Sequence record: MG655270.1
Direction: 5' to 3' (one strand)
DNA length: 64,000 nt
Shown: piece after piece, positions 5,449 through 63,906 of the stretch
Layout: every line of letters begins with the position of its first letter
Numbering within the stretch: position 1 is the stretch's first letter
Position numbers and translations under genes: made by a program
Notes under the pieces: generated by a model
What the model was told of the DNA's origin: nothing
The model's input: the letters and a program-made list of their open reading frames with translations, nothing else
The model's database searches: none

Positions 5449-5659
5449 AGTTAACATCGAGCAGGCCAATCGTTATGAGGGGTCTACCGATGATTTGGTC
5501 CAGCAAGCTAATGATCGTGGTTTTCTCCAGGGGATTCGTATCACTTCTGGCGAGGACATCGATCCAAGCATTTGGACACCTGAGAAGATCGAAAAGTTGA
5601 AAGCTGCACTTCGACATATTCGTGACTCAGAACAACGCATCAAAGGTAGCCAGGGGTAA
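5429..5659 (+). CDS. Hypothetical protein (probable GTG start, MDTNPTE...)
   Basis: GAGGGA RBS 6 nt before GTG 5429, in frame with track ORF 5387..5659. Confidence 0.55.
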   Translation: MDTNPTEVNIEQANRYEGSTDDLVQQANDRGFLQGIRITSGEDIDPSIWTPEKIEKLKAALRHIRDSEQRIKGSQG

Positions 5660-5677
5660 CACCCTGGCTTTATGCCG
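5648..5677 (+). terminator. Stem-loop plus TTATGCCG element
   Basis: AGCCAGGG-GTAACA-CCCTGGCT-TTATGCCG at gene end. Confidence 0.7.
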
Positions 5678-5697
5678 GTTTAACGAGGACGTGTAAC

Positions 5698-6153
5698 ATG
5701 GAATCGAGCGGTTTGATTACGCTGGCAATGGTCTTTTTAACCTTCGTCATTGGGTTATGTTGTTGGCTGACGCGTTTCATACGCTATCACACCAACCGCT
5801 ACACCGTTGACACCAAGAAGGCGTTAAAGCAATTTGCCTGTAAGCTTGAAAGAGTACTGGATGTCCCGCAGCCGTATTCGCTGGCACAAAGCGAAATGAC
5901 AAGGCTGGATAATGAACTGAACGCTTCTCTCTTCCTCTTTGAAGAGATCACAGGGAAGATCCACGATGAAACCAGTCGACTGTACCTGGAGTCAAGTTTC
6001 ATGGTGGTGCGCGGCACTCAACACGATACCCCGATTCGTATCTGTGTGGCGAACACAATCTTCAGCCTGTCAACGACTAACCACAATCACCACAGCGTCA
6101 TGAAGGTCATCAACGACTTTAATAACCGCTTGGCTAAAATTGTAGAAAGTTAA
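5698..6153 (+). CDS. Hypothetical protein with one N-terminal TM helix
   Basis: GAGG RBS; LITLAMVFLTFVIGLCCWL. Confidence 0.7.
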   Translation: MESSGLITLAMVFLTFVIGLCCWLTRFIRYHTNRYTVDTKKALKQFACKLERVLDVPQPYSLAQSEMTRLDNELNASLFLFEEITGKIHDETSRLYLESSFMVVRGTQHDTPIRICVANTIFSLSTTNHNHHSVMKVINDFNNRLAKIVES

Positions 6154-6167
6154 GCACAGAAAAACTC

Positions 6168-6190
6168 AGACCTATATCACGCCCGTGATA
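6168..6190 (+). promoter_or_regulatory. Candidate phage promoter variant (AGACCTATATCA) overlapping a TATCAC/GTGATA hairpin
   Basis: Resembles the AGACCTACATTA motif found upstream of other genes. Confidence 0.35.
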
Positions 6191-6216
6191 GACCCCTCAA
6201 CCCCCATTAATCTTAA

Positions 6217-6669
6217 GTGAGTTCAATCATGAAATACGTTTACACTATTATCGCTGTTCTTGGTTTCTCTTTTGTGTCTGTTGCAGTTGCTGCAGATCAA
6301 ACCAAAGTGGTGAAAGGCTGGTACGCCGAATACAACACGGCTTCGGTCCTGTATTCTGCTGGGCCAAAGAAAGGACAAGAATTGACTATGGAATGTGTAT
6401 TAGGTGGTTGGACGTTTGCGTATGCAGACAAGATGGGCGAGGAAGTAAACTCGGTCGATGATGACATGACAATCCTGGTCGACGGTGCAGCGTTTGCTGT
6501 GCCGAAGACGCAGAGTCAACGTGAGAAGTTATACGCCGCCATTCAGCATGCTAAGAGTGGTATTCAATACAAAACCCACGCCTATGGTGCGTCGGTAGTA
6601 TTCCCAGTGGATGGCTTGGCCGAGATGTTTCGTGACCTGCCGTTTGAAGTCAGCCCGTGCATGAGCTAA
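6217..6669 (+). CDS. Secreted/periplasmic protein with signal peptide (start may be ATG 6229)
   Basis: MKYVYTIIAVLGFSFVSVAVAA-DQ: n/h regions and an A-x-A cleavage site. Confidence 0.7.
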   Translation: MSSIMKYVYTIIAVLGFSFVSVAVAADQTKVVKGWYAEYNTASVLYSAGPKKGQELTMECVLGGWTFAYADKMGEEVNSVDDDMTILVDGAAFAVPKTQSQREKLYAAIQHAKSGIQYKTHAYGASVVFPVDGLAEMFRDLPFEVSPCMS

Positions 6670-6682
6670 AAGGAAAACAATT

Positions 6683-7384
6683 GTGATGGCCCCTACCAAA
6701 CAAATTAAACGCAGCTACCGTCTGATCAAAGTGACTGCCGATGTAACACGGGATAACTGGGTCGGGAAAGATATCGACTTCATTGTTCAGCCCAATAAAG
6801 ACATGATCGATGACACCACACGTGGTGGGCCTAATCGCCTGCTCGCGACATACAGCGTGCTGGGCAACCGCATACCTGTAACCGTTAACAGCCATGCGAC
6901 CATTACCCGGGAAGAAGGCTTGCAGGATCTGCAGGTTAGTATCGTCGATGGTCAGTCAAACTACATTGACATCAGTAATGTGCGTTACGTTGTGTCGTGT
7001 GAGTTAGAAGAGCACTTCACCTACACCCCACCAAAAGAACCTTCGCTACTTGATCAGCTGGTTGGCGGACCAATGGGTGACCCAACCCATATGTTCATTA
7101 TCGATGAAAACTATAACGTCTTTGTCGGCACAACGAACGATTCACAGGAAGATTATACCTTGGCTGGTCGTCTGGTCAGTAACCTCGGTTCTCATGATGC
7201 TGAAGCTAATGATTTGGAGATTATCGGCAGTTATCCTGATGACCAAGGTGACCACTACTACGTCTCCATTGACTGGAACAAGTCATTTATTTCCGGGATT
7301 TCCAACAACGAGAAATGCGAATGGTTTAACCAACTCGATGCACTGGTAGCAATGTTGCTGGAAAAGATTAAAGTTACAGTGTAA
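6683..7384 (+). CDS. Hypothetical protein
   Basis: 233 aa, AAGGA RBS. Confidence 0.7.
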   Translation: MMAPTKQIKRSYRLIKVTADVTRDNWVGKDIDFIVQPNKDMIDDTTRGGPNRLLATYSVLGNRIPVTVNSHATITREEGLQDLQVSIVDGQSNYIDISNVRYVVSCELEEHFTYTPPKEPSLLDQLVGGPMGDPTHMFIIDENYNVFVGTTNDSQEDYTLAGRLVSNLGSHDAEANDLEIIGSYPDDQGDHYYVSIDWNKSFISGISNNEKCEWFNQLDALVAMLLEKIKVTV

Positions 7385-7392
7385 GTAATATC

Positions 7393-7425
7393 AGGCAGGG
7401 GGACTACTCTCTGCCTTTATTTTTT
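7393..7425 (+). terminator. Intrinsic terminator
   Basis: AGGCAGGG(GG)-loop-CTCTCTGCCT followed by TTATTTTTT. Confidence 0.75.
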
Positions 7426-7496
7426 GTGGTATTCTGCCACAGAAAACTACTGGCCATACTACCAGTGGTATTCACTCAATAGACTGCGAGGAATAA

Positions 7497-8057
7497 ATGA
7501 TGTTTGATAAAATTGAAGGATTGGCTGATGTGATCGAGCTGAAGTACGGCTTGCTTGATATCACCTATCACCGCGATAACGACAAAGACCTCTATGTCGA
7601 TGTCTTTTATAAAGACACACGCTTGTCAAGCCGGCGTGACCTGACCGATGCCCTGGACTACGCTTATATCGGTGTGCGGTTGTGTAACCCTCAGTTCGGT
7701 GCCTGGTGTTATGGTGCTGAGCGTGAGTTGGTCATGTCGCATTTAATGGACGCATTGAGAATGGTGGGTAAGCCTGCACCCAGGGCGGTTGAAGACTCAC
7801 GGTTAAAGACAGGGATTCATCGTACCATTCAGCTGCTTGCCGAGAACGGTAACCTGCATCCGAAAGAGGATGATATCCGCATCACGATCCATCGTGCAGC
7901 ACGAGTGGACTACGGTTCAACAGATACCATCGAAACAACCATCAGCATGACCAACCACGATATTACTATTAGTAAGCGACGGATTGAGTGTGTCAGTGGT
8001 GAGATGCGGGATTTACAAGCATGGGCGCGTAAGTTATATGCGAGACACTTTGAATAA
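7497..8057 (+). CDS. Hypothetical protein
   Basis: 186 aa, GAGGA RBS. Confidence 0.7.
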   Translation: MMFDKIEGLADVIELKYGLLDITYHRDNDKDLYVDVFYKDTRLSSRRDLTDALDYAYIGVRLCNPQFGAWCYGAERELVMSHLMDALRMVGKPAPRAVEDSRLKTGIHRTIQLLAENGNLHPKEDDIRITIHRAARVDYGSTDTIETTISMTNHDITISKRRIECVSGEMRDLQAWARKLYARHFE

Positions 8058-8067
8058 CGAGGTAGCT

Positions 8068-8469
8068 ATGGGTAGTGCGTACTGTAAGGTTGTGGCAATC
8101 CACAGCATCTATGTACACAGTGCAGCGATGGAAGCGGTATCCGCTAAATACAGGAGCTGTTTTCGTTTGGCGTATAACTTCGTGAATGCTACGCAGTTAG
8201 CCCAACAGCTACGGCTTGCCGTGAAGAACAGCGAAATCCTGATTGTCGATACCAGTGACTTTACTCGCCGGGCACTTAACAATCTTAATGAGCAGTTCTA
8301 CTGCATCTATCCGGGTGAGGAACAACATTCCGATATGTCAGTCAAGCATCAGCGTAACTGTCGCATGACGCCTGACTGTATTCATATCGAAATTCAAAAC
8401 CTCAGCGACTTTGAGCGCTTAAACTGGGAAGTTCGACCCGATGCAGGGTTAAGGATATCACGCCGTTAG
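8068..8469 (+). CDS. Hypothetical protein
   Basis: GAGGT RBS before ATG 8068, in frame with track ORF 7984..8469. Confidence 0.65.
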   Translation: MGSAYCKVVAIHSIYVHSAAMEAVSAKYRSCFRLAYNFVNATQLAQQLRLAVKNSEILIVDTSDFTRRALNNLNEQFYCIYPGEEQHSDMSVKHQRNCRMTPDCIHIEIQNLSDFERLNWEVRPDAGLRISRR

Positions 8470-8471
8470 AA

Positions 8472-8522
8472 CGGCATATAGGCCCTCCATTACGGAGGGC
8501 CTTTTATGACATCTTTTTTTTT
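8472..8522. terminator. Bidirectional stem-loop at a convergent junction
   Basis: CGGCATA-T-AGGCCCTCC-ATTAC-GGAGGGCCT-TTTATGAC, then T9. Confidence 0.75.
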
Positions 8523-8533
8523 GGTTTACAGCG

Positions 8534-8980
8534 TTATACCAGGCGCTGAGTTAGCTGCGAACTATATTGAATAGCGTGATAGGTCGCAGGTTTCTCAAGC
8601 TGCTCGGTGCAGCGGTAGACCGGGGTCTTCATAAAAGGACAACCGGCATTCATTAATGCCTCACGGTTGCTGGGCGACTCATCAACGCGAATCACCACAT
8701 CCGTGGACTGGAAGCCAAAGACTTCCCGCTTCGTTGCAGTATATTCTGCATCCAGCACCACGATCTTACGGTTGATCACCAGCTTCACGGCCACCGGGTA
8801 TTTGATTACCAGGTCTGACCCTAAGCCCGCCAAGACAAACTTAATGACAAACTTCTTAAGTCCATTTAGCAACTGACTCTCACTGGCCCAACTTTTAACA
8901 ATCTGCAGCATGTGTGTATTTCCACTCATATAAGGGGAAGTTAAGAAAAGCAACCTGAGGGCCCGTCCGTGATCCCTCAT
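8534..8980 (-). CDS. Hypothetical protein (true start may be 8929 or 8911)
   Basis: ORF follows the frameshift gene and ends at the convergent terminator. Confidence 0.55.
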   Translation of the reverse strand: MRDHGRALRLLFLTSPYMSGNTHMLQIVKSWASESQLLNGLKKFVIKFVLAGLGSDLVIKYPVAVKLVINRKIVVLDAEYTATKREVFGFQSTDVVIRVDESPSNREALMNAGCPFMKTPVYRCTEQLEKPATYHAIQYSSQLTQRLV

Positions 8981-8986
8981 AATGTA

Positions 8987-9451
8987 TTACTTCATACCGT
9001 CCAACTGCTTTTGAAGTTCCTTTAACTGACGGCTTGCATCCGGCGTCTCGGCGTCATGATCTCTGATCGCTTCAATAAACGACTTCCGTTTGCAATAAGG
9101 ATACTTCATCCATTTATCAAATGACAAACCAAATTTGCCCAAGATATCCGCACGCAGATATTCGAGCTCATACTTTCGATACCCAACTAACGCCAGCGAG
9201 TCTTCCTGCTCGACCTGTAAGATTAACGAGAGCGGCGAGGTTTCCACGTTATGGTCAATAATCCCAAACGTGTCATCGTAAAGCTCTGTTAATCGAATTA
9301 GTGGATACTCCCAGTTCTCGGTAAGAAACGTGGGGTTTTCTAACGCGACATCCCAGGCATCGGACCGATCACTTTCGGACAGACCGAAATCCCAATGGAT
9401 TAGATGTCGGCTTGATCGAACGTCTGATTCAGTGTATTCGTCATTAGGGTA
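8987..9451 (-). CDS. Probable -1 frameshift extension of ORF 9400..11019 (fusion about 677 aa)
   Basis: Frame open from 9499 to 8987 with no ATG/GTG/TTG before 9247; slippery T TTT TTT at 9457-9451 is in register with the upstream ORF. Confidence 0.6.
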   Translation of the reverse strand, partial: YPNDEYTESDVRSSRHLIHWDFGLSESDRSDAWDVALENPTFLTENWEYPLIRLTELYDDTFGIIDHNVETSPLSLILQVEQEDSLALVGYRKYELEYLRADILGKFGLSFDKWMKYPYCKRKSFIEAIRDHDAETPDASRQLKELQKQLDGMK

Positions 9452-11019
9452 AAAAAAACCCGTGCTACGTTCAGCGGGGTGTACGCAGGGAAGGTGTTGC
9501 TAACTAGCGGTTGACGCGCCTGGCAGTTCGGGCATTTCCAACGCGGTACTGCGACTACACCGACCGTTACCCGGTTGATGAACTTGTTCAGCTCTTCAAA
9601 GAACGGTTTACGCATATCCGGGGTTGCACTGAATTGCTTCAGCAGCAATGCCACGTCATCGGCCGACTCAACATAGTTGCCATCGTTGAACTCGATCTTA
9701 GTCACCCAGTGGGCGTAACCGCGCATGGAGGACAGCGCTGCCTGTTTGTTGATGTGCTGCTCACGCTGCTCGCGCGTCATGCTGTCGTTGAAGCTGTCGG
9801 TGATCGCTTGTTGAATGCCGTTGATCCAGGCATAACCCGCTGCATTCTTATCTTCGAGTGATGGCACCCGCAGATAGAACTTCACATCTTTCACAGTGAT
9901 GACATTGTCTTTCATCACTTCAAAGCCGGTCTGATAGGCAACGACCTGCTCAACGGTACGGCCGCTGAAGTGAGACATGTGCGCACGCTGGGTTGGTGAC
10001 AGACGATTGTTGTCAATGATCGACAGACGAGAGACGTTAACTTTCGCTGCTTCAACATGCACACACTTCTTCGGATCGGCGGCACAGGCAGTAACCATGT
10101 GGTAGCCAGACTTAAAGCGTGCGCCCAGGTAGGCGTTAGCGATCAGATCAAGATCCTGCTCTTTGATTAACGGCAGCAGGGTTTTCTTATCGGAGACACC
10201 GATGCTGCTGTCAGTGACCATACCCAGCAGGAAGTCAGTCATGTGCTTACGCACCACGACATCCAGGTTGTTAAACACCAGACCGTTGGTACGACGACCG
10301 AGGATCGCTTTCTCAGCCATGATGGCGGTTTGCATATCCACAAACTCATCATCACCGGCAATCAGCAACGTAACCCAGATACCAGAATGTGGCAGCGGCA
10401 GATGGACATAGTCGCCCATGTTCATCACGCCACGAGCACGCATCACTGCCTGTGGACCGGTCAGCAGTTTAGTGCCTTCGGTACTGCGCTTCACTGGCGG
10501 GCGAGAAACACCCTGCACTTTGTTATTGTCGAGCAGAATACCCTGCAGCCACTGCGCACCATCTTGACGAATGGTCAGGTTCAGACCAGAACGGTACGAC
10601 AGGTTGGTGATGGCGTTACTGGCCAGGGATAGCCAGATCATCGCTTTATCAGCACCGTACAGACTGACGATCTCTTTTAAGATCTTCTTGTCTTCGGTGT
10701 TGGTGTCGATCTCATTGATCAACGCCGTCGCTGCATCGTAATCCTGATGCATGATAGACAGCACACCTTCCGTGCCGACATCCTCCATGGAGTTCAGCTT
10801 TTCAATGATCGGGTTCTGATAGAGCGGATCGAACGCCTGCTCAACGGCTTCAGCTTCAGGTGCTTCAGCTTCGCCCTGTTGGCCGGTTTCTGCTGGCTCG
10901 GGATCGGTGCCAATAGTACCAGTAGTCGCCGGACGGCCTGGATCAACTTCAGGAATACCAGAGTGGTTTTCTTCAACAGGCTCTTGCTGTGACAGAATGG
11001 ATGGGTTATCACCGGACAT
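9400..11019 (-). CDS. Putative tail/baseplate-hub assembly chaperone (T4 gp26/gp51-like C-terminus)
   Basis: Acidic N-terminal linker; Cys pairs CAADPKKC and WKCPNC; ends ...RVFFTL at the slippery site. Confidence 0.5.
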   Translation of the reverse strand: MSGDNPSILSQQEPVEENHSGIPEVDPGRPATTGTIGTDPEPAETGQQGEAEAPEAEAVEQAFDPLYQNPIIEKLNSMEDVGTEGVLSIMHQDYDAATALINEIDTNTEDKKILKEIVSLYGADKAMIWLSLASNAITNLSYRSGLNLTIRQDGAQWLQGILLDNNKVQGVSRPPVKRSTEGTKLLTGPQAVMRARGVMNMGDYVHLPLPHSGIWVTLLIAGDDEFVDMQTAIMAEKAILGRRTNGLVFNNLDVVVRKHMTDFLLGMVTDSSIGVSDKKTLLPLIKEQDLDLIANAYLGARFKSGYHMVTACAADPKKCVHVEAAKVNVSRLSIIDNNRLSPTQRAHMSHFSGRTVEQVVAYQTGFEVMKDNVITVKDVKFYLRVPSLEDKNAAGYAWINGIQQAITDSFNDSMTREQREQHINKQAALSSMRGYAHWVTKIEFNDGNYVESADDVALLLKQFSATPDMRKPFFEELNKFINRVTVGVVAVPRWKCPNCQARQPLVSNTFPAYTPLNVARVFFTLMTNTLNQTFDQADI

Positions 11020-11036
11020 TATGCTTATCCTTACCT

Positions 11037-11504
11037 TTACTTTTTAGTGGGGTCGACCTGAACCGGGTCATTGAGTTTGCTTGCTGCGCCAGCGGCAACC
11101 GCGTTAGCATGGGCGCTGTCTGACATGGTCAGAATGGCAGCACCGTGACGTTGCATCGCATCCAGCAATTTACTCTGCAGGACGATGTATTGTTCGTGCA
11201 CACTGAGGAAGTCAGCGATGGTGCTGTCATGCAAGGCATAACCGGTTTTGCCTTGATGCTGCTGCTTGATCATCGGCAGTGTTTCATCGATCTCTTTGAC
11301 TACAGCCAGCGCCGCTTCGATGTGCGAGCTTAACGCAGAGGGGTTTGGCTGAAAGCGAATGATGTTGGTGTTGACGGCCATGAGGCAAGTGTTGCTCAGC
11401 TCATTGCGCAAATTAATCGTATAAGTTGCCGCAGAATCCAGGTACTCCCAGAACTGATCGGGCTGATGGACCTCTGGTGCGAGAGGCGGTTCATTGGTTG
11501 ACAT
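11037..11504 (-). CDS. Hypothetical protein
   Basis: 155 aa, AAGGA RBS, co-oriented with the chaperone-like gene. Confidence 0.7.
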   Translation of the reverse strand: MSTNEPPLAPEVHQPDQFWEYLDSAATYTINLRNELSNTCLMAVNTNIIRFQPNPSALSSHIEAALAVVKEIDETLPMIKQQHQGKTGYALHDSTIADFLSVHEQYIVLQSKLLDAMQRHGAAILTMSDSAHANAVAAGAASKLNDPVQVDPTKK

Positions 11505-11596
11505 AACGGGTCCTTGAGGTGATTTATCTTGTGGCTTACATATATTGACACTACTAATGTCAACAATTACAACGTTTATACGGAAAAGGCACGGTC

Positions 11597-12508
11597 ATGA
11601 GTGATTTTACTGACTTAACGAAATTGAAGACCGAATTACCACAAAACATCCAAAAGATTGATGAGCAGGATGATGTGGGTGACTTCAGCGATCTTAACGA
11701 CTACCTCATGACCATCATTCCGGATGAACGGCGTGAGCGCTTGATCGCGATCTGTCAAAACTTGAGCACCCTGCAATATCATCAAGTCCAGCCCGATGTG
11801 GATCGGTTACTGATGATGGCCAACGACGGTGAAGCGCCGTCGGTACTCGATGACTTGACCCGGTTGTTATTTGAACACGCTTATGACTTAACGAAAAACA
11901 TGGGCTTTAACTGGGCTGATGAGATTGAGTTTGATCAGCTGTTCCTGCTCGGTGATGTAATCGAAGGTGCCATGTTGATTGATGGCATGGAAGACTACGG
12001 CGACCTCTCAGCGATCCTGGATGGGGATGACTCAGTTGAAGAGAAGGTGGTGGATATCTGGGGCCTGGTGCTCGACAAAGACATGCACCATCTCTTTGAA
12101 CAGATCCAGTCCATCGAACCGGCGGTGATCAGCGGGATCAAGCAAGTCACGACCCGACCGTATGCCGAAGACGATTATGCAGATGTGCAGCGCCCACTTG
12201 AGTTCGTGGTTGAGCGGTTGGTGAAAGTCCGTGAAATGATGAAGACCGATGGCATTGCTTACCAGCATGTGGCCAAGGGCGGGGCATTAGGCGTTGAGCT
12301 CGATTCACTGATCACGCTCTACACCCCTGAGTTGAATGCCGTGACCGATCCGATCGAACTGACCGACCTGCTGGTTGCCTTTACCCTGATCAGCAACACC
12401 CCGGATGGGTTGGTGAAATCCACCGCATCCCGGTTGGCAGAAAAATGGATTGATGATATCGAAGTCATCAATGTGGTAGGTAAACATATCGACAGGTATC
12501 CCGTGTGA
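11597..12508 (+). CDS. Acidic hypothetical protein (probably virion-associated)
   Basis: 303 aa, D/E-rich, coupled (GTGA overlap) to the RNAP gene. Confidence 0.7.
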   Translation: MSDFTDLTKLKTELPQNIQKIDEQDDVGDFSDLNDYLMTIIPDERRERLIAICQNLSTLQYHQVQPDVDRLLMMANDGEAPSVLDDLTRLLFEHAYDLTKNMGFNWADEIEFDQLFLLGDVIEGAMLIDGMEDYGDLSAILDGDDSVEEKVVDIWGLVLDKDMHHLFEQIQSIEPAVISGIKQVTTRPYAEDDYADVQRPLEFVVERLVKVREMMKTDGIAYQHVAKGGALGVELDSLITLYTPELNAVTDPIELTDLLVAFTLISNTPDGLVKSTASRLAEKWIDDIEVINVVGKHIDRYPV

Positions 12509-13815: not shown

Positions 13816-13826
13816 GGATATCTGAA

Positions 13827-13836
13827 ACCTACATTA
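13827..13836 (+). promoter_or_regulatory. Candidate phage promoter ACCTACATTA
   Basis: Identical 10-mer upstream of genes at 54045 and 63924; CTACATT core at 18105 and 24694. Confidence 0.5.
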
Positions 13837-13870
13837 TAAAAAGGATATGATTTAATAAAAGGAGTTCCCG

Positions 13871-14578: not shown

Positions 14579-14706
14579 AAGTATTTGGGGATGAGACGCA
14601 GAGCTGATTCCCATCTACGGTAAGTTGTTCAAGGAAGCAGCAAACCGGTTATAAAAAATGAAAGGGTTTTCGTAAGATAGTCAGTGCTCCGTACCCGAGA
14701 CAATAC

Positions 14707-14904: not shown

Positions 14905-14919
14905 ACTGCTGAGGTAGTC

Positions 14920-15377: not shown

Positions 15378-15406
15378 AGGAGAGCTTCGGCTCTCCTTTT
15401 ATGCCC
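15378..15406 (+). terminator. cUUCGg stem-loop plus TTTATGCCC
   Basis: AGGAGAGC-TTCG-GCTCTCCT-TTTATGCCC. Confidence 0.75.
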
Positions 15407-15421
15407 ATTAAGGAACATGTC

Positions 15422-20578: not shown

Positions 20579-20593
20579 TTGATCATTTGATCA

Positions 20594-20642
20594 GCATAAG
20601 GAGAGGCCTCGCGCCTCTCCTGTTTATGCCGTCTTTTTTTTT
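20594..20642. terminator. Bidirectional GCATAA-stem-loop-TTATGCCG element
   Basis: GCATAAGGAGAGGC-CTCGC-GCCTCTCCTGTTTATGCCG, then a T run; convergent genes. Confidence 0.8.
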
Positions 20643-21667: not shown

Positions 21668-21808
21668 AACTCCACCTCAAAATAAAATCCCGTTAGCAAG
21701 GGTTCTGGTTCTCTAATACATGACTTATAGGATTTAGCCGGCATAACGGAGCAGGCAACGCCTACTCCTGAATCCTGGTGTGAATAACGGTTGGTCGATT
21801 GGGGTATT

Positions 21809-22786: not shown

Positions 22787-22843
22787 GCATCATCCTTCTA
22801 GAATGAGTACCTTGACGACCTACTCGCGTCATAGCATTCCAGC

Positions 22844-22887
22844 CGGCATAAGGGAGTGGATACCCTGACCGTAGCCAAGGTATCCAC
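22844..22887 (-). terminator. Stem-loop plus TTATGCCG after DNA polymerase (minus strand)
   Basis: GTGGATACC...GGTATCCAC arms; CGGCATAA at 22844-22851 on the plus strand. Confidence 0.65.
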
Positions 22888-29235: not shown

Positions 29236-29237
29236 AT

Positions 29238-29289
29238 CGGCATAAAGGCCTGGCCTTCCTTGCGGAGGGCCAGAGCCTTGCTTATGCCG
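29238..29289. terminator. Bidirectional CGGCATAA-stem-loop-TTATGCCG element
   Basis: Perfect 8-bp outer inverted repeat around a GC-rich stem at a convergent junction. Confidence 0.8.
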
Positions 29290-32239
29290 TTAAGCTTGAC
29301 TTCGCTGAGGTATGTTTCAGGAAGGTAATGGAGATGTCTTCTTTCACCGTTAAGGTTTCATCCGACGCCACATCTACCCGTTTCTTGATGGCACACCGCA
29401 TGGTGTCATCTAATGCGGTCATGACTTTGATGTCACCGTTCACCCCGAGTGCTTTAAACTCGATATCAACCACATCAGACGTTCGATACGGTTTCAGCGC
29501 ATCAACCAGATCTGTTAGACCAAAGGTTGCCCGGGCAATCACTGCGGCAATAGCTGGACTCACTTTCGCTGACAGGTTGTCACGCAATGAGGTGTTCTTG
29601 TAACCGTTGTCGGTCATGTAGAAGGTTACGTCAAAACCAATCGCGGCGGAGATCTGACGAGACTCTCGTGCATTGGCAATCACATCGATCAAGCCCAGGG
29701 TTTGTTTCGGTCGTAACGACACCGTGGTCTTCTCAAGCAACTGCCGCTTCACCGTGACCATGTCTTGCGTCACCCAGTCAACCAGATCAGAGATCACATC
29801 AGTGATGTATGTCTTATCCAGCGGGTTACCGGTAAAGTAGTAGACACCATCCAGACCCACCACATCGATCTCACGCACCACCACACGTTCATTAAGCGGG
29901 ATAGGGTTACCTTGCTCATCCGACTTAATGTCACCCACCCGATAACGATAGATGATGTTGTTATCAGCGTCATACATGATGTCGCCTTTGGCATGCAGGA
30001 TGATCGGTTGGTTGTTGCTGTCAAACACCAATTGGTTAGTGACCGCATCACGTTGATACACCGTCTCTGCATAACGCCACGGCACATCGACATCATACTT
30101 CTGATACTCGATGTCAGACACCACTGAACGTGACCGCTGATACAGATAGGTCAGGGCTTTGCCCATCACCACATCGTAGGACTGCTCCGTCACCACCACG
30201 AACTGCTGATCCAGGTAGAAACTCCCCAGCTTCTTATCACTGTCGCTGTACACCACGTCGTTCGGTGATTTGGCCACAGCAATACAGTTTAGCAGGATGA
30301 AGTTCTTTTCCAGTACCGAGCGCAACTTAGACGGCGCATTACCAAACTGACCAAAGGAGGTCAGGATGATCTCGTCCTCATTGGTGATGTCGAGATTACT
30401 GTCAATATCAAACTGCCAGACACGTTCGCGGGTTGCTGTCCGACCGATCATCACGCCATTGAGGTAGCCATAGTTGCTTTCCCCTTCCGGCATGAACAGT
30501 AACTGACACGCCACATCGCTGTCTGCCAGGTCTTTGTAGTAATCACCTGAACTCGTTACCACGGTTGCTCTAAAGCCATTGGTGGTTTTGGTAAAGGTAA
30601 AACTGTCCGCCACAAGTTCAACACCGATGGAGTTGTTCTCATAGCTGAATACCCGACCTGCTACAGAAGGACGATCCAGATCATAGACCCGAGTGGTAAA
30701 CGCATCGTTATTCGCATCCAGCACCATGTAGAAAGGTGAGAACATGAACACGTTGTTGTTGACCGTCAAGGCACGACTGTCTAATCCCGCGCCGTTGATC
30801 GTGGCCAGTTCCGCATCTGATACCATGTTGTAGATACCGTTGACCAAGCGGTATAAGGCTGTCGGAGTGATGGTGATGCGATTGCCGTTATCACGCACTG
30901 CGGTATTACTGACTAACTGCAACATCGATGACTGCAGGGTAATAATCCCGGTACCGGCCGGTGTATTGATGCCAGACTTGTTGGTCTGCGGATTCAGTGA
31001 CCGGGTCGCATGGTAAATACGTTGCGTCACTGTGTCTTCTGATTTCAATGCCCCGTAGCCTAAATCAACCAGGGTTTGTGAGACCTGCGCTTCAGTAATC
31101 GGTAAGACCGTTTTGTTGGCCGAATAGATCACCGCTTCACGCAACGCTTCAACACTGAGGCCGTTCACCCCACCGCTGACACCGCTGCTGATCGACATGG
31201 TCTTTTCATTAAAGACGGTCAATGGGGTAGAGTACTTATCCAACACCCGATCTTCGTAATTGAAGTCACGGTAGACCGCACTGATCGAAGAAGACTGCAG
31301 CGCCAGCGTTTCGATAACCAGGTTACCTTTACTGGTGTAGACATCTGCCCGCACCTGACGACCCACTGCCAGATTGTTGGAGATGTAGATTTCCGGTAGC
31401 ACAACCTTCACTGAGTCTTCTAACACCTGGGCGACGAAGGTCAGCTTGGTGTTGTCATAGACCAGGTCATCATGGGTGACGTACGCCTCTTCCCACTCAT
31501 CAGTCACATTCGCCCGTGTAAAGACACGCAGGTAATAGAACTGGTCACCTTTTAATGGATAGGTATTGCGATACCCACTCATGCTGGTAATCTGACCGTA
31601 ATAAGGCTGGGCTTTGAACTGACGTAAAGGTACCGTGATGTAGAGCAGTTCAACCCCGTTGAAGATCGCAGTCCGCCAGGTTAACTGGTTGGTTTCAACC
31701 GTCAGTAACGGGCTGGGTTGCGACACATCGTACACCACCACAAAGCCGCCATGTTTCATCACCCGGATTTCAATCGGATACTCCAGACTGAAGGTGACAT
31801 CCATCACCGTGATTTCCGTGTTGCGCGGAATCACCATCTTCGAGTAGATGCTGTCGATGTCATCGCTACCACTGCTGTCGAGTTGCACCGCTCGTGCCCG
31901 AATCTCATCGGCATTGAAAATGAAGTTGGTGGTGATACGTGACGGAGTACAGAAACGGTTCTTGTAATCCTCATCACTCATGTTGCGATACAGATCTTCA
32001 TACGTCCGCGCCATCTTCGGGTAGTACGCCGTATAAAGGTCTTCATGGTTTTGCATCACCGCTGAACCGGTCAGGGCAACCAGCTCAAAAGCAAACATCG
32101 CAGGGTTGGTGGCATTCATGATATCAATCGTGCCGTCCATGTTTTGGTCTAACAGATCGAGTGTGTAGTCCATCATCAACGATGGATCATTACGCAGGTC
32201 GATCATTTTCTGTTTACGTACGTCGATGCTGTCGCTCAT
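29282..32239 (-). CDS. Putative baseplate wedge protein (T4 gp6/baseplate-J-like)
   Basis: 985 aa, beta-rich; SGGVNGLSVEALRE resembles the GG..ES.E.LR motif; synteny with the phiKZ structural block. Confidence 0.5.
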   Translation of the reverse strand: MSDSIDVRKQKMIDLRNDPSLMMDYTLDLLDQNMDGTIDIMNATNPAMFAFELVALTGSAVMQNHEDLYTAYYPKMARTYEDLYRNMSDEDYKNRFCTPSRITTNFIFNADEIRARAVQLDSSGSDDIDSIYSKMVIPRNTEITVMDVTFSLEYPIEIRVMKHGGFVVVYDVSQPSPLLTVETNQLTWRTAIFNGVELLYITVPLRQFKAQPYYGQITSMSGYRNTYPLKGDQFYYLRVFTRANVTDEWEEAYVTHDDLVYDNTKLTFVAQVLEDSVKVVLPEIYISNNLAVGRQVRADVYTSKGNLVIETLALQSSSISAVYRDFNYEDRVLDKYSTPLTVFNEKTMSISSGVSGGVNGLSVEALREAVIYSANKTVLPITEAQVSQTLVDLGYGALKSEDTVTQRIYHATRSLNPQTNKSGINTPAGTGIITLQSSMLQLVSNTAVRDNGNRITITPTALYRLVNGIYNMVSDAELATINGAGLDSRALTVNNNVFMFSPFYMVLDANNDAFTTRVYDLDRPSVAGRVFSYENNSIGVELVADSFTFTKTTNGFRATVVTSSGDYYKDLADSDVACQLLFMPEGESNYGYLNGVMIGRTATRERVWQFDIDSNLDITNEDEIILTSFGQFGNAPSKLRSVLEKNFILLNCIAVAKSPNDVVYSDSDKKLGSFYLDQQFVVVTEQSYDVVMGKALTYLYQRSRSVVSDIEYQKYDVDVPWRYAETVYQRDAVTNQLVFDSNNQPIILHAKGDIMYDADNNIIYRYRVGDIKSDEQGNPIPLNERVVVREIDVVGLDGVYYFTGNPLDKTYITDVISDLVDWVTQDMVTVKRQLLEKTTVSLRPKQTLGLIDVIANARESRQISAAIGFDVTFYMTDNGYKNTSLRDNLSAKVSPAIAAVIARATFGLTDLVDALKPYRTSDVVDIEFKALGVNGDIKVMTALDDTMRCAIKKRVDVASDETLTVKEDISITFLKHTSAKSSLTA

Positions 32240-41832: not shown

Positions 41833-41866
41833 AGGGGGAGAGGGGTTTCCCTCTCCTCTTATACCG
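41833..41866 (+). terminator. Stem-loop plus TTATACCG variant
   Basis: GGGGGAGAGGG-GTTT-CCCTCTCCTC-TTATACCG. Confidence 0.7.
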
Positions 41867-41883
41867 ACCAAGAAGGTGAATGC

Positions 41884-44226: not shown

Positions 44227-44566
44227 TAACAGTAACAAGGCGTTGTATAATGCAGCGCGCTTGCCTGTTCTTTACGAGTACCCGCATGACTTCACCCCGT
44301 ATGCCCGTTTACTGGCTAACGAGAAGCAAGGCGCACAACCTTCGCAGGCGTTTGCTGAGATGCTGGCTAAGGTAACGGGTGATCCCTGGACACTGACCCC
44401 TAAGCAACCGTATACCCTGTACGGTGCCAAGGTGACGTTGATTGGTGAGAACCAGCCCAACTTCCCAACCAGTAAACGGTTTCCTTACGTCCTGGTGTTG
44501 CAGTTGAGTACCCGGTATCAAGAACGCAAGTTATACCTGAGCTTTAAGATCTTGAAATCGAGCTGA
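44219..44566 (+). CDS. Putative virion structural protein
   Basis: GGAGG RBS before ATG 44219; overlaps the previous stop. Confidence 0.6.
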   Translation: MTDNSNKALYNAARLPVLYEYPHDFTPYARLLANEKQGAQPSQAFAEMLAKVTGDPWTLTPKQPYTLYGAKVTLIGENQPNFPTSKRFPYVLVLQLSTRYQERKLYLSFKILKSS

Positions 44567-44603
44567 GCATAAGGAGAGGGCAAACGCCCTCTCCTCTATG
44601 CCG
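44567..44603. terminator. Bidirectional GCATAA-stem-loop-CTATGCCG element
   Basis: GCATAAGGAGAGGGC-AAAC-GCCCTCTCCTCTATGCCG; convergent genes. Confidence 0.8.
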
Positions 44604-45305
44604 TTATGCTTGTGGTGCTTCGCCACTGCCATCAGCTGGCGTGGTTTCATCTTCACTGAACGTATTGGGAATACGAGGCAGATCACCAATCACGGTTGCA
44701 GAGGTTACCGCGTTCTTGAAAGTCCAGTAACGCTCAAGGTACGCATTATAAGACTCCAGCAGACGCTCAACCACGTCGATCACTTCAACCGGTAAGAGTT
44801 CAACCATTTGACCGTCAACAGTACGCAGACGGAATTTGGTTTCATCGGAGGCCCCGACGCGTTTCTCACCGACCACACGCATGCCCATCAGGTTAGCGCG
44901 TTCTTCAGCAGTCATCACCACTTTGTAGTCTGTGCTGTCGTGGGTAAATGCGATGCCGTTGTTAAGATCATTACTGATGATCTCTTTGGCACTTTGCAGC
45001 GACATGTCTTTACCCATTGCCAGGTTGGCTGCGAGCTCTTCTTCATTATAAGCCCGCACATCCCAGAACTGGTAATAAAGACCGTCATCACCTTTAACCG
45101 GTGTGCCTTCGGTCACCACATCACCATCCGGCCGATCAACCATGTTGACCATGGCGTAAGGACGAGGAAGGTTCAGCAGCTTCTCAGACTCGATGGTGCT
45201 ACCCCAGCTGGTTTGCATGTTGTCCTGACGGGCATCATACATGTACTTCGGGTAAGCCATATCCTCGATACGGACGAGGGGTGTAGAATTCGTTACTGTA
45301 GTCAT
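44604..45305 (-). CDS. Tail-fibre assembly/chaperone-like protein (DUF4376-like C-terminus)
   Basis: YPKYMYD...GTPVKGDDGLYYQFWDVR N-terminal part; ERANLMG...FRLRTVDGQMVEL; directly downstream of the fibre gene. Confidence 0.6.
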   Translation of the reverse strand: MTTVTNSTPLVRIEDMAYPKYMYDARQDNMQTSWGSTIESEKLLNLPRPYAMVNMVDRPDGDVVTEGTPVKGDDGLYYQFWDVRAYNEEELAANLAMGKDMSLQSAKEIISNDLNNGIAFTHDSTDYKVVMTAEERANLMGMRVVGEKRVGASDETKFRLRTVDGQMVELLPVEVIDVVERLLESYNAYLERYWTFKNAVTSATVIGDLPRIPNTFSEDETTPADGSGEAPQA

Positions 45306-54044: not shown

Positions 54045-54054
54045 ACCTACATTA
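54045..54054 (+). promoter_or_regulatory. Candidate phage promoter ACCTACATTA
   Basis: Third identical copy, about 35 nt upstream of ATG 54089. Confidence 0.5.
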
Positions 54055-54088
54055 TCGAGATGATCCAATAAAATATAAGGACTTCACC

Positions 54089-57207: not shown

Positions 57208-57242
57208 TAAGCAGGAGTAAGGAAACTTACTCCGCTTATGCC
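57208..57242 (+). terminator. GAAA-tetraloop hairpin plus TTATGCC
   Basis: GGAGTAAG-GAAA-CTTACTCC-GCTTATGCC. Confidence 0.75.
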
Positions 57243-57267
57243 AATTTAATTTAACCGGACGTGTATC

Positions 57268-58175: not shown

Positions 58176-58182
58176 ACTTAAT

Positions 58183-58250
58183 CGGCATAACCCCCTGAGA
58201 GAGAAGCGCAATGCTTCTCTCTCAGGGATGCCTGAATCTCTTTTTTTTTT
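58183..58250 (+). terminator. 15-bp stem flanked by CGGCATAA/ATGCC, followed by T10
   Basis: CCCTGAGAGAGAAGC-GCAAT-GCTTCTCTCTCAGGG. Confidence 0.8.
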
Positions 58251-60783: not shown

Positions 60784-63051
60784 ATGGCATTGAAACTTCT
60801 GCATGTAGCTAAAACCGCCGACATGCTGTCACGCATCCAATCTCAGATCAATGGCGGCCATGCATCAGGCGACGCTACCGCGGTTAAAAGCTACGGTATG
60901 GAGTCGCTTGACGGCAACACTCTGGGCGCGCAGGAAACCGCCATCAAAAATGGTATCTCTGTCATTACCGACGTGATCGCTCAGGGCACCGCATCTCAGG
61001 GCCAGAGCTACGCCGGTAACGGTCTGGAAGGTTTCTCTGATGCACAGATCCAAGCGGCATCAATCGCACTGACTATCGGTGGTGACTTCCAGGGTTACAT
61101 CGGTGCACTGAAAAACAACTCTAACCGTGCCATGTCTGCATCTGACCTGAGCCTGGTTTCCGGTAGCCGTTACGGCTCTGCTAACATGAAGCAGGGTTAC
61201 GGTACCGAAGCTTTCGAACAGGCGCAGAGCTTTGTTCCTCAGCAGAACGCAACGGTTGAATACAACCTGAAAGCGGCTAAGCAGGATGCCGTTGGTGAAG
61301 CCTTCTTCCCAACTACTACCCTGACGCCAAACGACATCGGCCTGAGCGTAACTGTGCCGGTTGACATCGTTGAACCTTTCATCAAGCACAAAGCAAATGG
61401 CGAAGTGACGGATTGGCAGCGTAAGAAGCTCATCAACGCAATGCGTGACCCGACCATTCTGCGTAACGACGCGATCAAGCTGATTCCTTATCGTCCACTG
61501 GACGGCAGCAACGACGCACAGTTCGCAGTAGGCGTGCCGAAGTTCAACGAAATTCAGGGCGGCGAAGAAGTACCAACTGGTGCACTGAAGCCTGGTACCA
61601 AAATCGGTTTCATGGGTCTGTGCTCTACTCCGTCTCTGGTTCAGGCCGGCGCGCTGGAAGCATCTGATCAGATCGACACCGGTGCTCGTCTGCAGTACAT
61701 CTGGATCGAAGTAGCTAACGCCTCTGGTACCAAAGAGCTGTTCAAGCTGCGTACTGATCACCTGGATCGTTCTACTTTCCAGAAATCTCAGGAAGGCGAT
61801 AAGTTCGAGACGTCTCTGGACTTCTCTAACATCACCATCGCGCTGAACGACCTGAACAAAACCACCGACAACACCGATTCAGCTCTGCTGGCTCCGTTGG
61901 TGACTTCTGGTCAGCAAGCGATCCTGGCGCTGGATATCAAAGGCACCATGAACCACGAGAAAGGCAGCCTGGTAGTTAACTCGCTGACTAACCCGTCTAT
62001 CATCCGTGTTTACGATACCGTGGCTAAAGAAGATGCGAACACCAAGTCTGGTGCTCTGCGTGACGCAATCGACGCTCTGACGATCACCTTCAAAGGTTAC
62101 TTCGTCCGCGCTAACCTGCGTAACAGCAACTTCCGTACCCGCGAGCAGCGTGTTGACCGCCAGACTTCCGTGTACAAGTACATGGTACAGCTGGGCGCAC
62201 CAATCACTGCTATCGCTCCAGTAACTGACGCATGGGGCCCGAAAGAGTCTATCGCAGTTGAAACCCTGAGCAACGCAACGTATGCACGTAACTCCGCAAT
62301 GGCTATCAGCCGTCTGCTGGACTACGTTGAAACCATCCGTGATGCTGGCGTGACCAACAACGGTCTGTGGCAGCGTTACGATGAGAACAGCATCGAAGGC
62401 GTTGGTAAAGCTGTAGTTGATCCATGGTACGGCGAAGGTAGCTTTGACATCTCTAAAGTTGTCAACGGTGTTAAATCTTCTCAGACCCGCGACGACGTTT
62501 CTGAAAAGATCCTGAACATCCTGCGTACCTACGCATACCGCATGAACGCCGAGTCTGGCTACAACGTTGCACTGCAGATGCTGTACAACGAAGTTCAGCC
62601 AACGCTGGTTATCGCAACCGACAACATCATCGCGCAGTACCTGATGGAAGTTGGTGACCTCCGCACAGCTGGTATCAGCTTCAAAGTGCACGTGGCCACC
62701 ACCAACAACATCGAGATGCGCGGCAAGATCATCATGACCCTGTCTCGTATGAAGTCAGGTGGTCTGGATCTGCTGACGTTCGGTATGCACCTGTGGGTAC
62801 CTGAGATCGTAGCAACTGTTAACGTAATGCGTAACGGTACCTACATCGAAGAAACCATGGTGCAGCCGCGTAACCTGCACGTAGTGGTTTGCCCAATCGT
62901 GGCGAACATCACCATCACCGGTCTGGAAGAAGCGTACACCGGCAAGATCACTGTCCCTGTTGACATCGTGAGCGAGCCTGAGTCTGCTGGTACCCAGGAC
63001 CTGGGTGGTCTGAACACTACTCCGGCAACTACTACCAACCCTGCTGCGTAA
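60784..63051 (+). CDS. Major capsid protein precursor (phiKZ gp120-like)
   Basis: 755 aa, strongest codon bias in the window; GME/GLE/GTE cleavage sites in the N-terminal ~145 aa; DAVGEAFFPTTTLTP; TMVQPRNLH; synteny. Confidence 0.9.
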   Translation: MALKLLHVAKTADMLSRIQSQINGGHASGDATAVKSYGMESLDGNTLGAQETAIKNGISVITDVIAQGTASQGQSYAGNGLEGFSDAQIQAASIALTIGGDFQGYIGALKNNSNRAMSASDLSLVSGSRYGSANMKQGYGTEAFEQAQSFVPQQNATVEYNLKAAKQDAVGEAFFPTTTLTPNDIGLSVTVPVDIVEPFIKHKANGEVTDWQRKKLINAMRDPTILRNDAIKLIPYRPLDGSNDAQFAVGVPKFNEIQGGEEVPTGALKPGTKIGFMGLCSTPSLVQAGALEASDQIDTGARLQYIWIEVANASGTKELFKLRTDHLDRSTFQKSQEGDKFETSLDFSNITIALNDLNKTTDNTDSALLAPLVTSGQQAILALDIKGTMNHEKGSLVVNSLTNPSIIRVYDTVAKEDANTKSGALRDAIDALTITFKGYFVRANLRNSNFRTREQRVDRQTSVYKYMVQLGAPITAIAPVTDAWGPKESIAVETLSNATYARNSAMAISRLLDYVETIRDAGVTNNGLWQRYDENSIEGVGKAVVDPWYGEGSFDISKVVNGVKSSQTRDDVSEKILNILRTYAYRMNAESGYNVALQMLYNEVQPTLVIATDNIIAQYLMEVGDLRTAGISFKVHVATTNNIEMRGKIIMTLSRMKSGGLDLLTFGMHLWVPEIVATVNVMRNGTYIEETMVQPRNLHVVVCPIVANITITGLEEAYTGKITVPVDIVSEPESAGTQDLGGLNTTPATTTNPAA

Positions 63052-63078
63052 GCACCAGGCGCGAGAGTAATCCGTAGC

Positions 63079-63118
63079 GCATAAACAGAGGAGGAGCAAT
63101 GCTCCTCCTCTTATGCCG
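63079..63118 (+). terminator. GCATAA-stem-loop-TTATGCCG after the capsid gene
   Basis: AGAGGAGGAGC-AAT-GCTCCTCCTCT-TATGCCG. Confidence 0.8.
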
Positions 63119-63156
63119 TGTGATTTTATAGAGGCACACACCAGGGGCGGATAGTA

Positions 63157-63870
63157 ATGCTTGAATTACTAATGATAGGAAGGAAGAAAGTAACAGGGAG
63201 TGGGATACCTGCAGATCTTGGACCAGGACCTGCCTCCATGCTTGGGTATTACGAACGACCGGATGGCGGTAACTCAGGGTACTTCGGTACCTTTACTAAT
63301 TTTGTTTCAACAGCTGGGTTATGTCAATCTATCGGGTTAACTGCAGGCTATCAACAAACTGAGAATGCCACTTGGCATAAGTTTCTGTTAGATGGTAAGA
63401 TCCTCTTTATACCAACCAACTATATAGTGCGTAACCTCCATTGGAACTACATTTATAATGCCGGGGCAGTATACGGAGATGACAGTTTTGGTCTTTATCA
63501 AAGCCCAACGCCAACAGCACAGAGTGCCATGCATGTGACGGTGGATGGTCGGGTTTATCGCGTGCGGTTAGTATCTATCTCAAATGGTGATCCGGCTCTG
63601 ACAGGCCAAATCGATAAAACCACCGAATGGGGTCGGTTGATGTATCCGATTGATCCAACGGTAGACGCTAGCAATACTGAGGCGGGTAAGAAATGGGGTA
63701 ACGTGGGACTGCTTTTGAGTTCAACGCAGATTCTGGCAAAGGAGACCTACGCCAGCACACCTGCTAGTAGCCTGGTTGTGGTTACGAATTCTACGACACG
63801 CTCCGCTCAATCTAAATCATCCGCACCCAGTAACTGCACCTGGCGTCCGATTCTTGAACTTGTGCAGTAA
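63157..63870 (+). CDS. Putative virion accessory protein, MLELLM family
   Basis: MLELLMIGRKK start; GYFG...GLTAG...WHKFLLDGKILFIP...WRPILELV pattern of expanded jumbo-phage virion paralogues. Confidence 0.65.
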   Translation: MLELLMIGRKKVTGSGIPADLGPGPASMLGYYERPDGGNSGYFGTFTNFVSTAGLCQSIGLTAGYQQTENATWHKFLLDGKILFIPTNYIVRNLHWNYIYNAGAVYGDDSFGLYQSPTPTAQSAMHVTVDGRVYRVRLVSISNGDPALTGQIDKTTEWGRLMYPIDPTVDASNTEAGKKWGNVGLLLSSTQILAKETYASTPASSLVVVTNSTTRSAQSKSSAPSNCTWRPILELVQ

Positions 63871-63875
63871 GCTCT

Positions 63876-63906
63876 AAGAGGAAGGCTCCGGCCTCCTCTT
63901 ATGCCG
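63876..63906 (+). terminator. Stem-loop plus TTATGCCG
   Basis: AAGAGGAAGGC-TCCG-GCCTCCTCTT-ATGCCG. Confidence 0.75.

Follow-up and report, generated by a model that had tools for sequence, protein, structure and literature searches.

Probable phiKZ-type transcription terminators with a conserved TTATGYYG tail box in the Erwinia jumbo phage vB_EamM_Mortimer

Transcription terminators of phage phiKZ consist of a stem-loop followed by TTATKYYGT and were described for 61 terminator regions (Putzeys et al. 2024, Microlife, PMC10914365). For phage 201phi2-1, terminator motifs A and B were described, and eight validated elements act as terminators in uninfected Pseudomonas chlororaphis, where transcription is by the host RNA polymerase (RNAP) (Microb Biotechnol 2024, PMC11512511). 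The tetranucleotide TATG is also the core of the phiKZ late promoter, where its G is position +1; nvRNAP requires it for initiation and binds it through a GP123 pocket (Yakunina et al. 2015, PMC4666361; IUCrJ 2026, PMC12809450). Motif searches were carried out in the original genome paper of Erwinia phage vB_EamM_Mortimer, and their results were then dismissed (PMC6690015).

Mortimer is a phiKZ-like jumbo phage of the genus Agricanvirus. Its annotation contains seven RNAP beta-like genes, and the homologue of the phiKZ nvRNAP subunit GP123 is gp2 (tblastn, E 1e-48). The window analyzed here is the final 64 kb of the genome (record MG655270.1). An earlier note on this DNA had reported GC-rich hairpins at gene ends followed by TTATGCC(G) or a near variant, mirrored on the other side at some junctions. 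All sites named there were recovered within 1-2 nt of the positions given, including the five mirrored, two-sided sites; one minus-strand site, between gp291 and gp290, had been missed (Table 1). Very probably, the elements are phiKZ-type transcription terminators that depend on a hairpin and serve the multisubunit RNA polymerases encoded by the phage. Their anatomy, enrichment, placement relative to genes and conservation were established on Mortimer itself; RNA 3' ends and termination activity are taken from relatives, by analogy with which Mortimer transcripts would end at the elements. They represent the Erwinia-phage version of a stop signal known from RNA-end sequencing of phiKZ and 201phi2-1, which makes the finding a largely ordinary one.

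Gene junctions were counted using a final gene caller that followed the strand blocks annotated in GenBank. Annotated stop codons were matched across the window, except that of the short gene gp261, which was missed; as a few start codons were off and approximately 10 surplus short ORFs were called, junction counts are approximate. For genome-wide analysis, a hairpin was scored as strong when the 40 nt upstream of the box folded at −12 kcal/mol or below. An Rfam scan of the window matched no family. Among sequencing runs searched for the phage, two DNA runs contained it and no RNA run did. When the literature was searched for TTATGCCG and TATGCCGT as exact words, the single match was a PCR primer in a paper on a Klebsiella jumbo phage.

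TATGCCG occurred 16 times in the window, compared with 6.8±2.6 times after shuffling (0 of 100 shuffles reached 16), and TTATGCC 19 times, compared with 6.3±2.5. Eleven of the 16 TATGCCG copies were located directly 3' of a strong hairpin, and the hairpin-less copies (eight of TTATGCC, five of TATGCCG) equalled chance expectation. Unlike this GCC form, the fully degenerate pattern TTATKYYGT was not enriched by itself in the window (17 vs. 14.3 expected). The genome-wide search that the earlier note had proposed confirmed enrichment after hairpins: a strong upstream fold accompanied 57 of 131 TATGCC copies, compared with 6% of random positions. Among one-letter variants this fraction was 3-14%, and it reached 25% for TATGCT, a genuine tail variant. 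Following hairpins, the top-enriched 5-mers were TATGC and TTATG (52-53 observed, 1.7-1.8 expected), and RNA folding of ten window sites yielded z-scores of −2.8 to −7.5. The coupling of hairpin and tail is real and far from chance. Genome-wide, 65 hairpin loci with 77 oriented elements were found. Canonical sites, in which a hairpin is followed by a T run, were not enriched in positions 1-20000 of the window (24 found, 18.9 expected).

The logo of the post-hairpin tail in Mortimer reads T (76%), TATG, C (79%), C/T (89%) and G (66%). Within the first 8 nt past the stem, two T residues were counted in 22 elements, three in 37, four in 16 and five in two (n = 77). Hence 59 elements carry at most three and 75 fewer than five, in line with the earlier remark that many copies lack a U tract; five or more consecutive T within 18 nt past TATG occur in only 15 of the 77. 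The hairpins had also been described as unrelated in sequence. Stems do differ between loci, but the bases of their 5' arms are 80% purine (AGGAGAGG-like), and identical hairpins of 24-26 nt are shared by two to three loci each; the one between gp307 and gp308 (44572-44595) has the same sequence as those at genome positions 27537 and 156863. Since stem lengths vary, an alignment of 45 Mortimer elements was in poor register. UUCG or GNRA loops at co-directional sites were found 14 times in the sense and once in the antisense orientation.

With the approximate gene calls, an element was present genome-wide at 17 of 18 convergent junctions, at none of 18 divergent junctions and in 34 of the 122 co-directional gaps that measured 40 nt or more. 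Hairpins start at a median distance of 8 nt from the stop codon (IQR 5-19), whereas TATG lies at widely varying distances from the next start codon (median 52 nt, IQR 31-94). TATGC is found on both strands at 12 loci, and flanks form inverted repeats at 14 junctions. Half-sites are 18 to 44 nt apart. At most co-directional sites the downstream half stands alone, an upstream CATA being present at 6 of 33. The window sites are listed in Table 1.

Table 1. Probable terminators in the window, with positions in window coordinates
Location	Position	Strand	Hairpin	Tail	Remarks
3' of gp256 (helicase, stop 757)	770..807	+	770-799, −18.5 kcal/mol	variant TATGCTTT, then T-rich stretch	
overlapping gp266 stop codon	5648..5678	+	5648-5669	T-TATGCCGG	z −2.8; next gene from 5698
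convergent gp271/gp272	8471..8512	both	8480-8502	− TATGCCGT; + TATGACAT, then T run	two-sided
3' of gp280	15378..15407	+	15378-15397, UUCG loop	TT-TATGCCCA	z −3.6
convergent gp288/gp289	20591..20632	both	20599-20621	+ TATGCCGT, then T10; − TATGCTGA	two-sided; stem lengthened by pairing flanks; z −5.1 and −6.2
between gp291 and gp290	21738..21768	−	21748-21768	GT-TATGCCGG	
3' of gp292 (DNA polymerase)	22843..22887	−	22856-22887	5-nt gap, then TATGCCGG	
convergent gp296/gp297	29237..29290	both	29245-29279, −37.7 kcal/mol	TATGCCG on each strand	two-sided; stem extended by CGGCATAA/TTATGCCG flanks; z −6.0
3' of gp305	41834..41867	+	41834-41859	variant TATACCGA (TATACCG)	z −3.5; next gene from 41884
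convergent gp307/gp308	44564..44604	both	44572-44595	+ C-TATGCCGT; − TATGCTCA	two-sided; z −6.3
3' of gp319	57210..57244	+	57210-57236, GAAA loop	TATGCCAA	z −5.8
convergent gp321/gp322 (DnaB)	58182..58234	both	58194-58226	− TATGCCGA; + degenerate GATGCCTG, T run further on	
3' of gp324 (major capsid)	63076..63119	+	63087-63111	TATGCCGT	weak − strand mirror TATGCGCT; z −7.5
3' of gp325	63877..63907	+	63877-63899	TATGCCGA	

The tail logo T-TATG-Y-Y-G is common to Mortimer, Erwinia phage AH06, Proteus phage 10, 201phi2-1 and phiKZ. With the phiKZ motif the elements share a GC-rich stem-loop followed by T-TATG-Y-Y-G-(T), location at gene ends, bidirectionality between convergent genes and a high copy number per genome; in phiKZ and 201phi2-1, a like terminator follows the major capsid gene, at the position matching that of the gp324 terminator. 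They differ from it in that the degenerate positions are fixed as GCC (TTATGCCG) in Mortimer, resulting in fewer U residues, and in that the polarity of the stem is reversed, the 5' arm being 80% purine in Mortimer and 29% in phiKZ. Despite this reversal, the tail box is the same in Pseudomonas phages of 37% GC and in Erwinia and Proteus phages of 50% GC. Between Mortimer and AH06, identity at tail positions +5 to +7 amounts to 98%, 86% and 93%, compared with 51-72% further downstream. AH06 retains the positions of the sites at gene ends, with some palindrome centres flipped relative to Mortimer. Compensated stem changes were identified as single examples (such as genome positions 145737, 84294 and 218392) rather than by a position-by-position count, covariation being noisy because several hairpins were replaced and not mutated. 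Within the same phage group, SPN3US and Vibrio phage pVa-21 have plain T runs after their hairpins and no tail box. The major capsid proteins of Mortimer and of the relatives with mapped 3' ends are only approximately 27% identical.

Motifs A and B of 201phi2-1 likewise combine a hairpin with TTTATGYY, and an upstream CATA box lengthens the stem. All eight validated termination sites of that phage lie directly after a hairpin with (T)TATGYY or a close variant of it (TATACC; in one case the site is a base further 5'), seven of them immediately 5' of the conserved G. Their activity was demonstrated in the uninfected host. The earlier suggestion of a phage-RNAP-specific terminator is upheld as regards the terminator, by the architecture shared with phiKZ and 201phi2-1 and by the genomic distribution, but not as regards specificity: because the eight 201phi2-1 sites terminate in uninfected cells, the Mortimer signal, by analogy, need not be specific to phage polymerases. 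The first 8 nt of the validated 201phi2-1 tails contain four T, compared with two to three in Mortimer, whose elements, being poorer in U, may therefore differ in efficiency and in the polymerase that responds.

Canonical intrinsic terminators resemble the elements in their GC-rich hairpin, in RNA release a few nucleotides past the stem and in function residing in the RNA strand. They differ in the U tract, in place of which Mortimer has fixed A, G and YYG; these bases fall outside the standard model of intrinsic termination and are not explained by it. The class II termination or pause signal of T7 RNA polymerase is a fixed short sequence that acts without a hairpin on a single-subunit enzyme. 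There too a short fixed sequence and not a U run helps to halt a phage polymerase; the Mortimer elements, however, always include a hairpin, and the polymerases are multisubunit.

As to mechanism, we infer the following roles for the individual tail bases and the responding polymerase. The nascent RNA would fold into a GC-rich stem-loop a few bases past the stop codon, and (T)TATGC(C/T)G would stand in for the usual U tract. The proximal UUAU may provide a weak RNA:DNA hybrid beside the hairpin, while the step from pyrimidine to G could act as a pause-like release point. Judging from the mapped ends of 201phi2-1, transcripts would end approximately 7-8 nt past the stem, after TATGYY and right before the conserved G. 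Between convergent genes, the reverse complement (C)GGCATA(A) 5' of the hairpin would yield one palindrome able to halt transcription from either side, and the paired flanks at such sites may also lengthen the stem.

The earlier note correctly equated the TATG core with the phiKZ late-promoter consensus and raised the possibility of dual use, in which the hairpin ends the upstream unit and the tail serves as an nvRNAP late promoter, so that the next gene is transcribed anew from the G. The tetranucleotide, on the non-template strand, is indeed that of the promoter, and gp2 retains the residues F151, K158, H331, S334 and Q466. Several co-directional sites, moreover, lie 17-31 nt ahead of the next start codon (19-31 nt for TATGCC or TATGCT tails) with no other promoter candidate; such gaps leave no room for a separate promoter, which implies that transcription either reads through or starts within the tail. 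Dual use is nevertheless unlikely. Divergent junctions, which require promoters, have no element, and nearly all convergent ones, where a promoter would yield only antisense RNA, have one; the spacing of the elements is locked to the stop codon and not to the next start codon. At divergent junctions TATG is followed by A/T-rich sequence and not by CCG, and promoter copies in phiKZ need no hairpin, its model late promoter P119L having none upstream. Mortimer also has a distinct promoter-like motif, CTAYATTAY, which is often found 3' of a terminator, as is CTACATTAC at 63926, 19 nt past the gp325 terminator. A promoter role for the elements is not supported. Use of the tail ATG as a start codon was rejected as well: in Mortimer it is preceded by a pyrimidine-rich 3' arm and hence by no ribosome-binding site.

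The same TATG might instead be read during elongation by the promoter-recognizing non-template-strand pocket (GP123; gp2 in Mortimer), acting in place of the U tract as a sensor for pausing or release. The mapped 3' ends of 201phi2-1, two bases beyond the G of TATG, fit this, as does a difference in residues K158 and S334 of the pocket in the T-run users SPN3US and pVa-21, a tiny and phylogenetically confounded sample. The published structure, in which the pocket is incomplete in the transcribing complex, counts against it, and we consider it improbable. A 3'-terminal RNA tag, whereby transcripts ending in hairpin-UUAUGCC are read by a phage protein for stability or export from the phage nucleus, would accommodate the non-U bases A3, G5 and G8, which intrinsic termination does not require, and the retention of the tail between phages of 37% and 50% GC while stem polarity flips. 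It is nonetheless highly unlikely: it has no known protein partner, the 201phi2-1 elements terminate without any phage protein, and the plain T runs of SPN3US and pVa-21 mean that the tag would not be general. No support was found for 3' processing or for a tag read in RNA binding or export. The identical hairpins, the inverted-repeat flanks and the flipped palindrome centres might also suggest an element acting as DNA, either a dispersed REP-like palindrome or the site of a dimeric DNA-binding protein (GGCATAA...TTATGCC). The variable half-site spacing, the single downstream half at most co-directional sites, the sense-strand bias of UUCG and GNRA loops, which points to RNA, and the conserved gene-end positions in AH06 make this exceedingly improbable.

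Across distant jumbo phages, conservation resides in the tail box and not in the stem. The question is thereby sharpened to why transcription stops at a hairpin with TTATGYYG and not at a U tract, and whether the shared TATG ties termination to promoter recognition; if the pocket did read the tail, the promoter-recognition module would have a second role, sensing a specific sequence at which to pause or release. As probable terminators, the elements show where transcription units end and provide a ready terminator map for Agricanvirus, with approximately 65 loci in Mortimer, 14 of them within the window, which is useful for annotating and engineering these phages.

The window makes up the final 64 kb, positions 209,915-273,914, of the linear record MG655270.1 (273,914 bp) of Erwinia phage vB_EamM_Mortimer (genus Agricanvirus), to which window 36000-44000 was matched by megablast at 100% identity. 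It was analyzed together with the whole annotated Mortimer genome to allow a genome-wide assessment of the motif. Genes were re-called genome-wide from the strand blocks of the annotation; the annotated stop codons of the window were reproduced except that of the short gene gp261, and approximately 10 extra short ORFs were obtained genome-wide. Counted over the genome, 77 oriented elements, consisting of a GC-rich hairpin and a (T)TATGCC(G)-type tail, were present at 65 hairpin loci. Each position listed in the earlier note carried a GC-rich stem-loop with (T)TATGCC(G), or a tail close to it, 0-5 nt further on, and the five sites described there as mirrored were all as reported. The features located in this analysis are collected in the table.

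Features of the terminator family and associated sequences in Mortimer (L003 and L005, Mortimer sequence)
Feature	Position	Strand	Remark
Element absent from the earlier list	window 21738-21768	minus	
Identical 24-nt hairpin, AGGAGAGGGC-AAAC-GCCCTCTCCT	window 44572-44595, identical to genome 27537-27560 and 156863-156886		three convergent junctions
Palindrome centre flipped relative to AH06	window 29245-29279; L005:4933-4966		outer stem and tail unchanged
T run of 7-10 after the tail (TATGCYGC-T8)	window 8513-8521, 20633-20642; genome 97654, 112036, 145774, 173608	+	many convergent junctions
Hairpin (AGGCAGGGGG...CTCTGCCT), then TTATTTTTTG	window 7393-7426		
Hairpin (GGAGGGGTTTAACGACCCCTCC), then TC-TATACCG	window 39031-39062		within 5′ part of gp304, away from gene end
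Good TTATGCCGG tail on antisense strand only	L003:11331-11372 (genome 11338)	minus	after gp7; similar at a few co-directional + junctions
CTAYATTAY copies	window 13829-13838, 54047-54056, 63926-63935; 20 more in genome	+	
gp2, GP123 homologue	L003:1001-2689		E 1e-48

The window contains 19 copies of TTATGCC (dinucleotide shuffles, 6.3±2.5) and 16 of TATGCCG (shuffles, 6.8±2.6). Copies without a hairpin (8 and 5, respectively) were at chance level, so the entire excess of the motif belongs to hairpins. Enrichment after hairpins, on which the earlier note had made its proposal depend, was also present genome-wide: the 40 nt upstream folded at −12 kcal/mol or below for 57/131 copies of TATGCC and 20/79 of TATGCT. 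A fold of this strength lay upstream of 6% of random positions, and of 3-14% of copies of the remaining hexamers that differ from TATGCC by one letter. Downstream of perfect hairpins with 7 or more base pairs, TATGC and TTATG were the most enriched 5-mers (52-53 observed, 1.7-1.8 expected). For ten window sites folded using ViennaRNA, z-scores ranged from −2.8 to −7.5.

Hairpins started at a median of 8 nt past the stop codon (IQR 5-19), while the interval separating TATG from the following start codon varied widely (median 52 nt, IQR 31-94). An element was present at 17 of the 18 convergent junctions, the sole empty one being an abutting gene pair, at none of the 18 divergent junctions and in 34 of the 122 co-directional gaps that were 40 nt or longer. 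At convergent sites, (C)GGCATA(A) lies upstream of the stem, so that hairpin plus TATGC can be read on both strands, and the two flanks base-pair, making the stem longer. At co-directional sites, upstream CATA was found in 6 of 33 cases, with approximately 0.8 expected. The antisense-only tails suggest either that antisense transcripts are stopped there or that an originally two-sided site has left a remnant.

That many copies lack a U tract was borne out, as 59 of the 77 elements had at most three T within 8 nt after the stem, and a standard scan for a hairpin plus T run in window positions 1-20000 gave no excess (24 versus 18.9). In 15 of the 77 elements a U run occurs approximately 8-10 nt past the stem. 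The tail at window 7393-7426 is a T-rich, phiKZ-like form of the box (K = T) and resembles a canonical terminator. The hairpin internal to gp304 could be due to chance or be an internal attenuator. The earlier description of the hairpins as unrelated in sequence holds in part only: 5′ stem arms in Mortimer are AGGAGAGG-like and 80% purine, and identical hairpins recur at two to three loci, pointing to copying or gene conversion among the terminators. A second repeated hairpin (AGAGGAGGAGC...) was seen at two to three convergent junctions. UUCG and GNRA loops at co-directional sites were found 14 times on the sense strand and once on the antisense strand; this bias points to sense-strand RNA as the level at which the element works.

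Related and more distant phages were compared. The tail logo T-TATG-Y-Y-G was the top signal after hairpins in Mortimer, Erwinia phage AH06, Proteus phage 10, 201phi2-1 and phiKZ. TATG was also the top signal in Ralstonia phage RSF1 and Serratia phage 2050HW, with looser flanks and no dominant G at +7, 2050HW preferring CTATG. Plain T runs followed the hairpins in SPN3US and Vibrio phage pVa-21, and no TATG signal after hairpins was found in Bacillus phage AgentSmith or T4. Purines made up 80% of the 5′ arm in Mortimer; the value was 61% for Proteus phage 10 and 29% for phiKZ and 201phi2-1, and all of them share the same tail box. Stem polarity is genus-specific and, since it is reversed between Mortimer and phiKZ/201phi2-1, the conserved part is the tail and not the stem. 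Between AH06 and Mortimer, the element was retained at 46 of 53 anchored sites, with flanks 73-90% identical; tail identity was 98% at +5, 86% at +6 and 93% at +7, versus 51-72% further downstream. Several stems showed compensatory changes or outright replacement with an unchanged tail. Palindrome flips between the two phages were also seen, for example loop TTGC versus GCAA, or an inverted inner arm; the palindrome core appears to have been inverted.

In phiKZ, 133 terminator regions were mapped by ONT-cappable-seq (Putzeys et al. 2024, PMC10914365). In 201phi2-1, 59 terminators carry motif A, the same as the phiKZ motif, frequently accompanied by a motif B that extends the hairpin, and eight terminators were validated by reporter assay in uninfected P. 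chlororaphis (PMC11512511). Inspection of the 201phi2-1 genome placed 8/8 published termination coordinates, all on the + strand, directly 3′ of a GC hairpin and (T)TATGYY or a near variant, with TATACC at one site and the end one base earlier at another. The conserved G was the next base at 7/8 of these sites, and CATA preceded the stem at most of them. Such an element lies 3′ of the major capsid gene in phiKZ, 201phi2-1 and Mortimer (gp324; window 63087-63119).

The earlier note rightly equated TATG with the core of the phiKZ late promoter, in which G is +1 and the nvRNAP subunit GP123 binds on the non-template strand, and proposed dual use as terminator and promoter. Dual use is not supported by the distribution, which is terminator-like in its near-complete occupancy of convergent junctions, its absence from divergent ones and its anchoring to stop codons. 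Transcription initiation at the tail is possible for a few sites located 17-31 nt upstream of a start codon. Against a promoter role of the elements in general, what follows TATG at divergent junctions is A/T-rich sequence and not CCG, P119L, the model late promoter of phiKZ, has no hairpin, and another motif, CTAYATTAY, often just 3′ of the terminator, as at window 63926, looks like the promoter of those units. Preceded by an A/T-rich stretch, it occurs in 23 copies in the genome (approximately 8 expected), all on the + strand, mostly intergenic and mostly with a start codon 42-105 nt further downstream. CTAYATTAY is probably a promoter class of Mortimer, and possibly an early virion-RNAP promoter.

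Structure, strand-specific RNA features, placement and conservation of the element were observed directly. In relatives, 3′ ends 7-8 nt past the stem and termination by host RNAP have been shown; by analogy, transcripts of Mortimer would end at the same distance. UUAU next to the stem would provide a weak proximal hybrid, and the release point would be a pyrimidine followed by G, similar to the step at which multisubunit RNAPs prefer to enter the elemental pause. Of the proposed phage-RNAP-specific terminator, the terminator part was upheld; specificity for the phage enzyme is not required, because the 201phi2-1 elements are active without phage proteins. In Mortimer, with its less U-rich tails, termination may depend on the phage enzymes. 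In an alignment of ten GP123 homologues, pocket residues F151, H331 and Q466 were nearly universal, and K158 and S334 were kept in 6/6 lineages with TATG tails and changed in the T-run users SPN3US and pVa-21. With identities of 22-29%, a small sample and phylogeny as a confounder, this gives a weak hint that the GP123 pocket residues are tied to the TATG-tail type. A published structure describes the TATG pocket of GP123 as incomplete in the transcribing complex.

In the Agricanvirus genome paper, MEME was run and the resulting motifs were dismissed (PMC6690015); the elements are therefore undescribed for Agricanvirus. They are the Agricanvirus form, with a GCC box, of a known, published kind of terminator.
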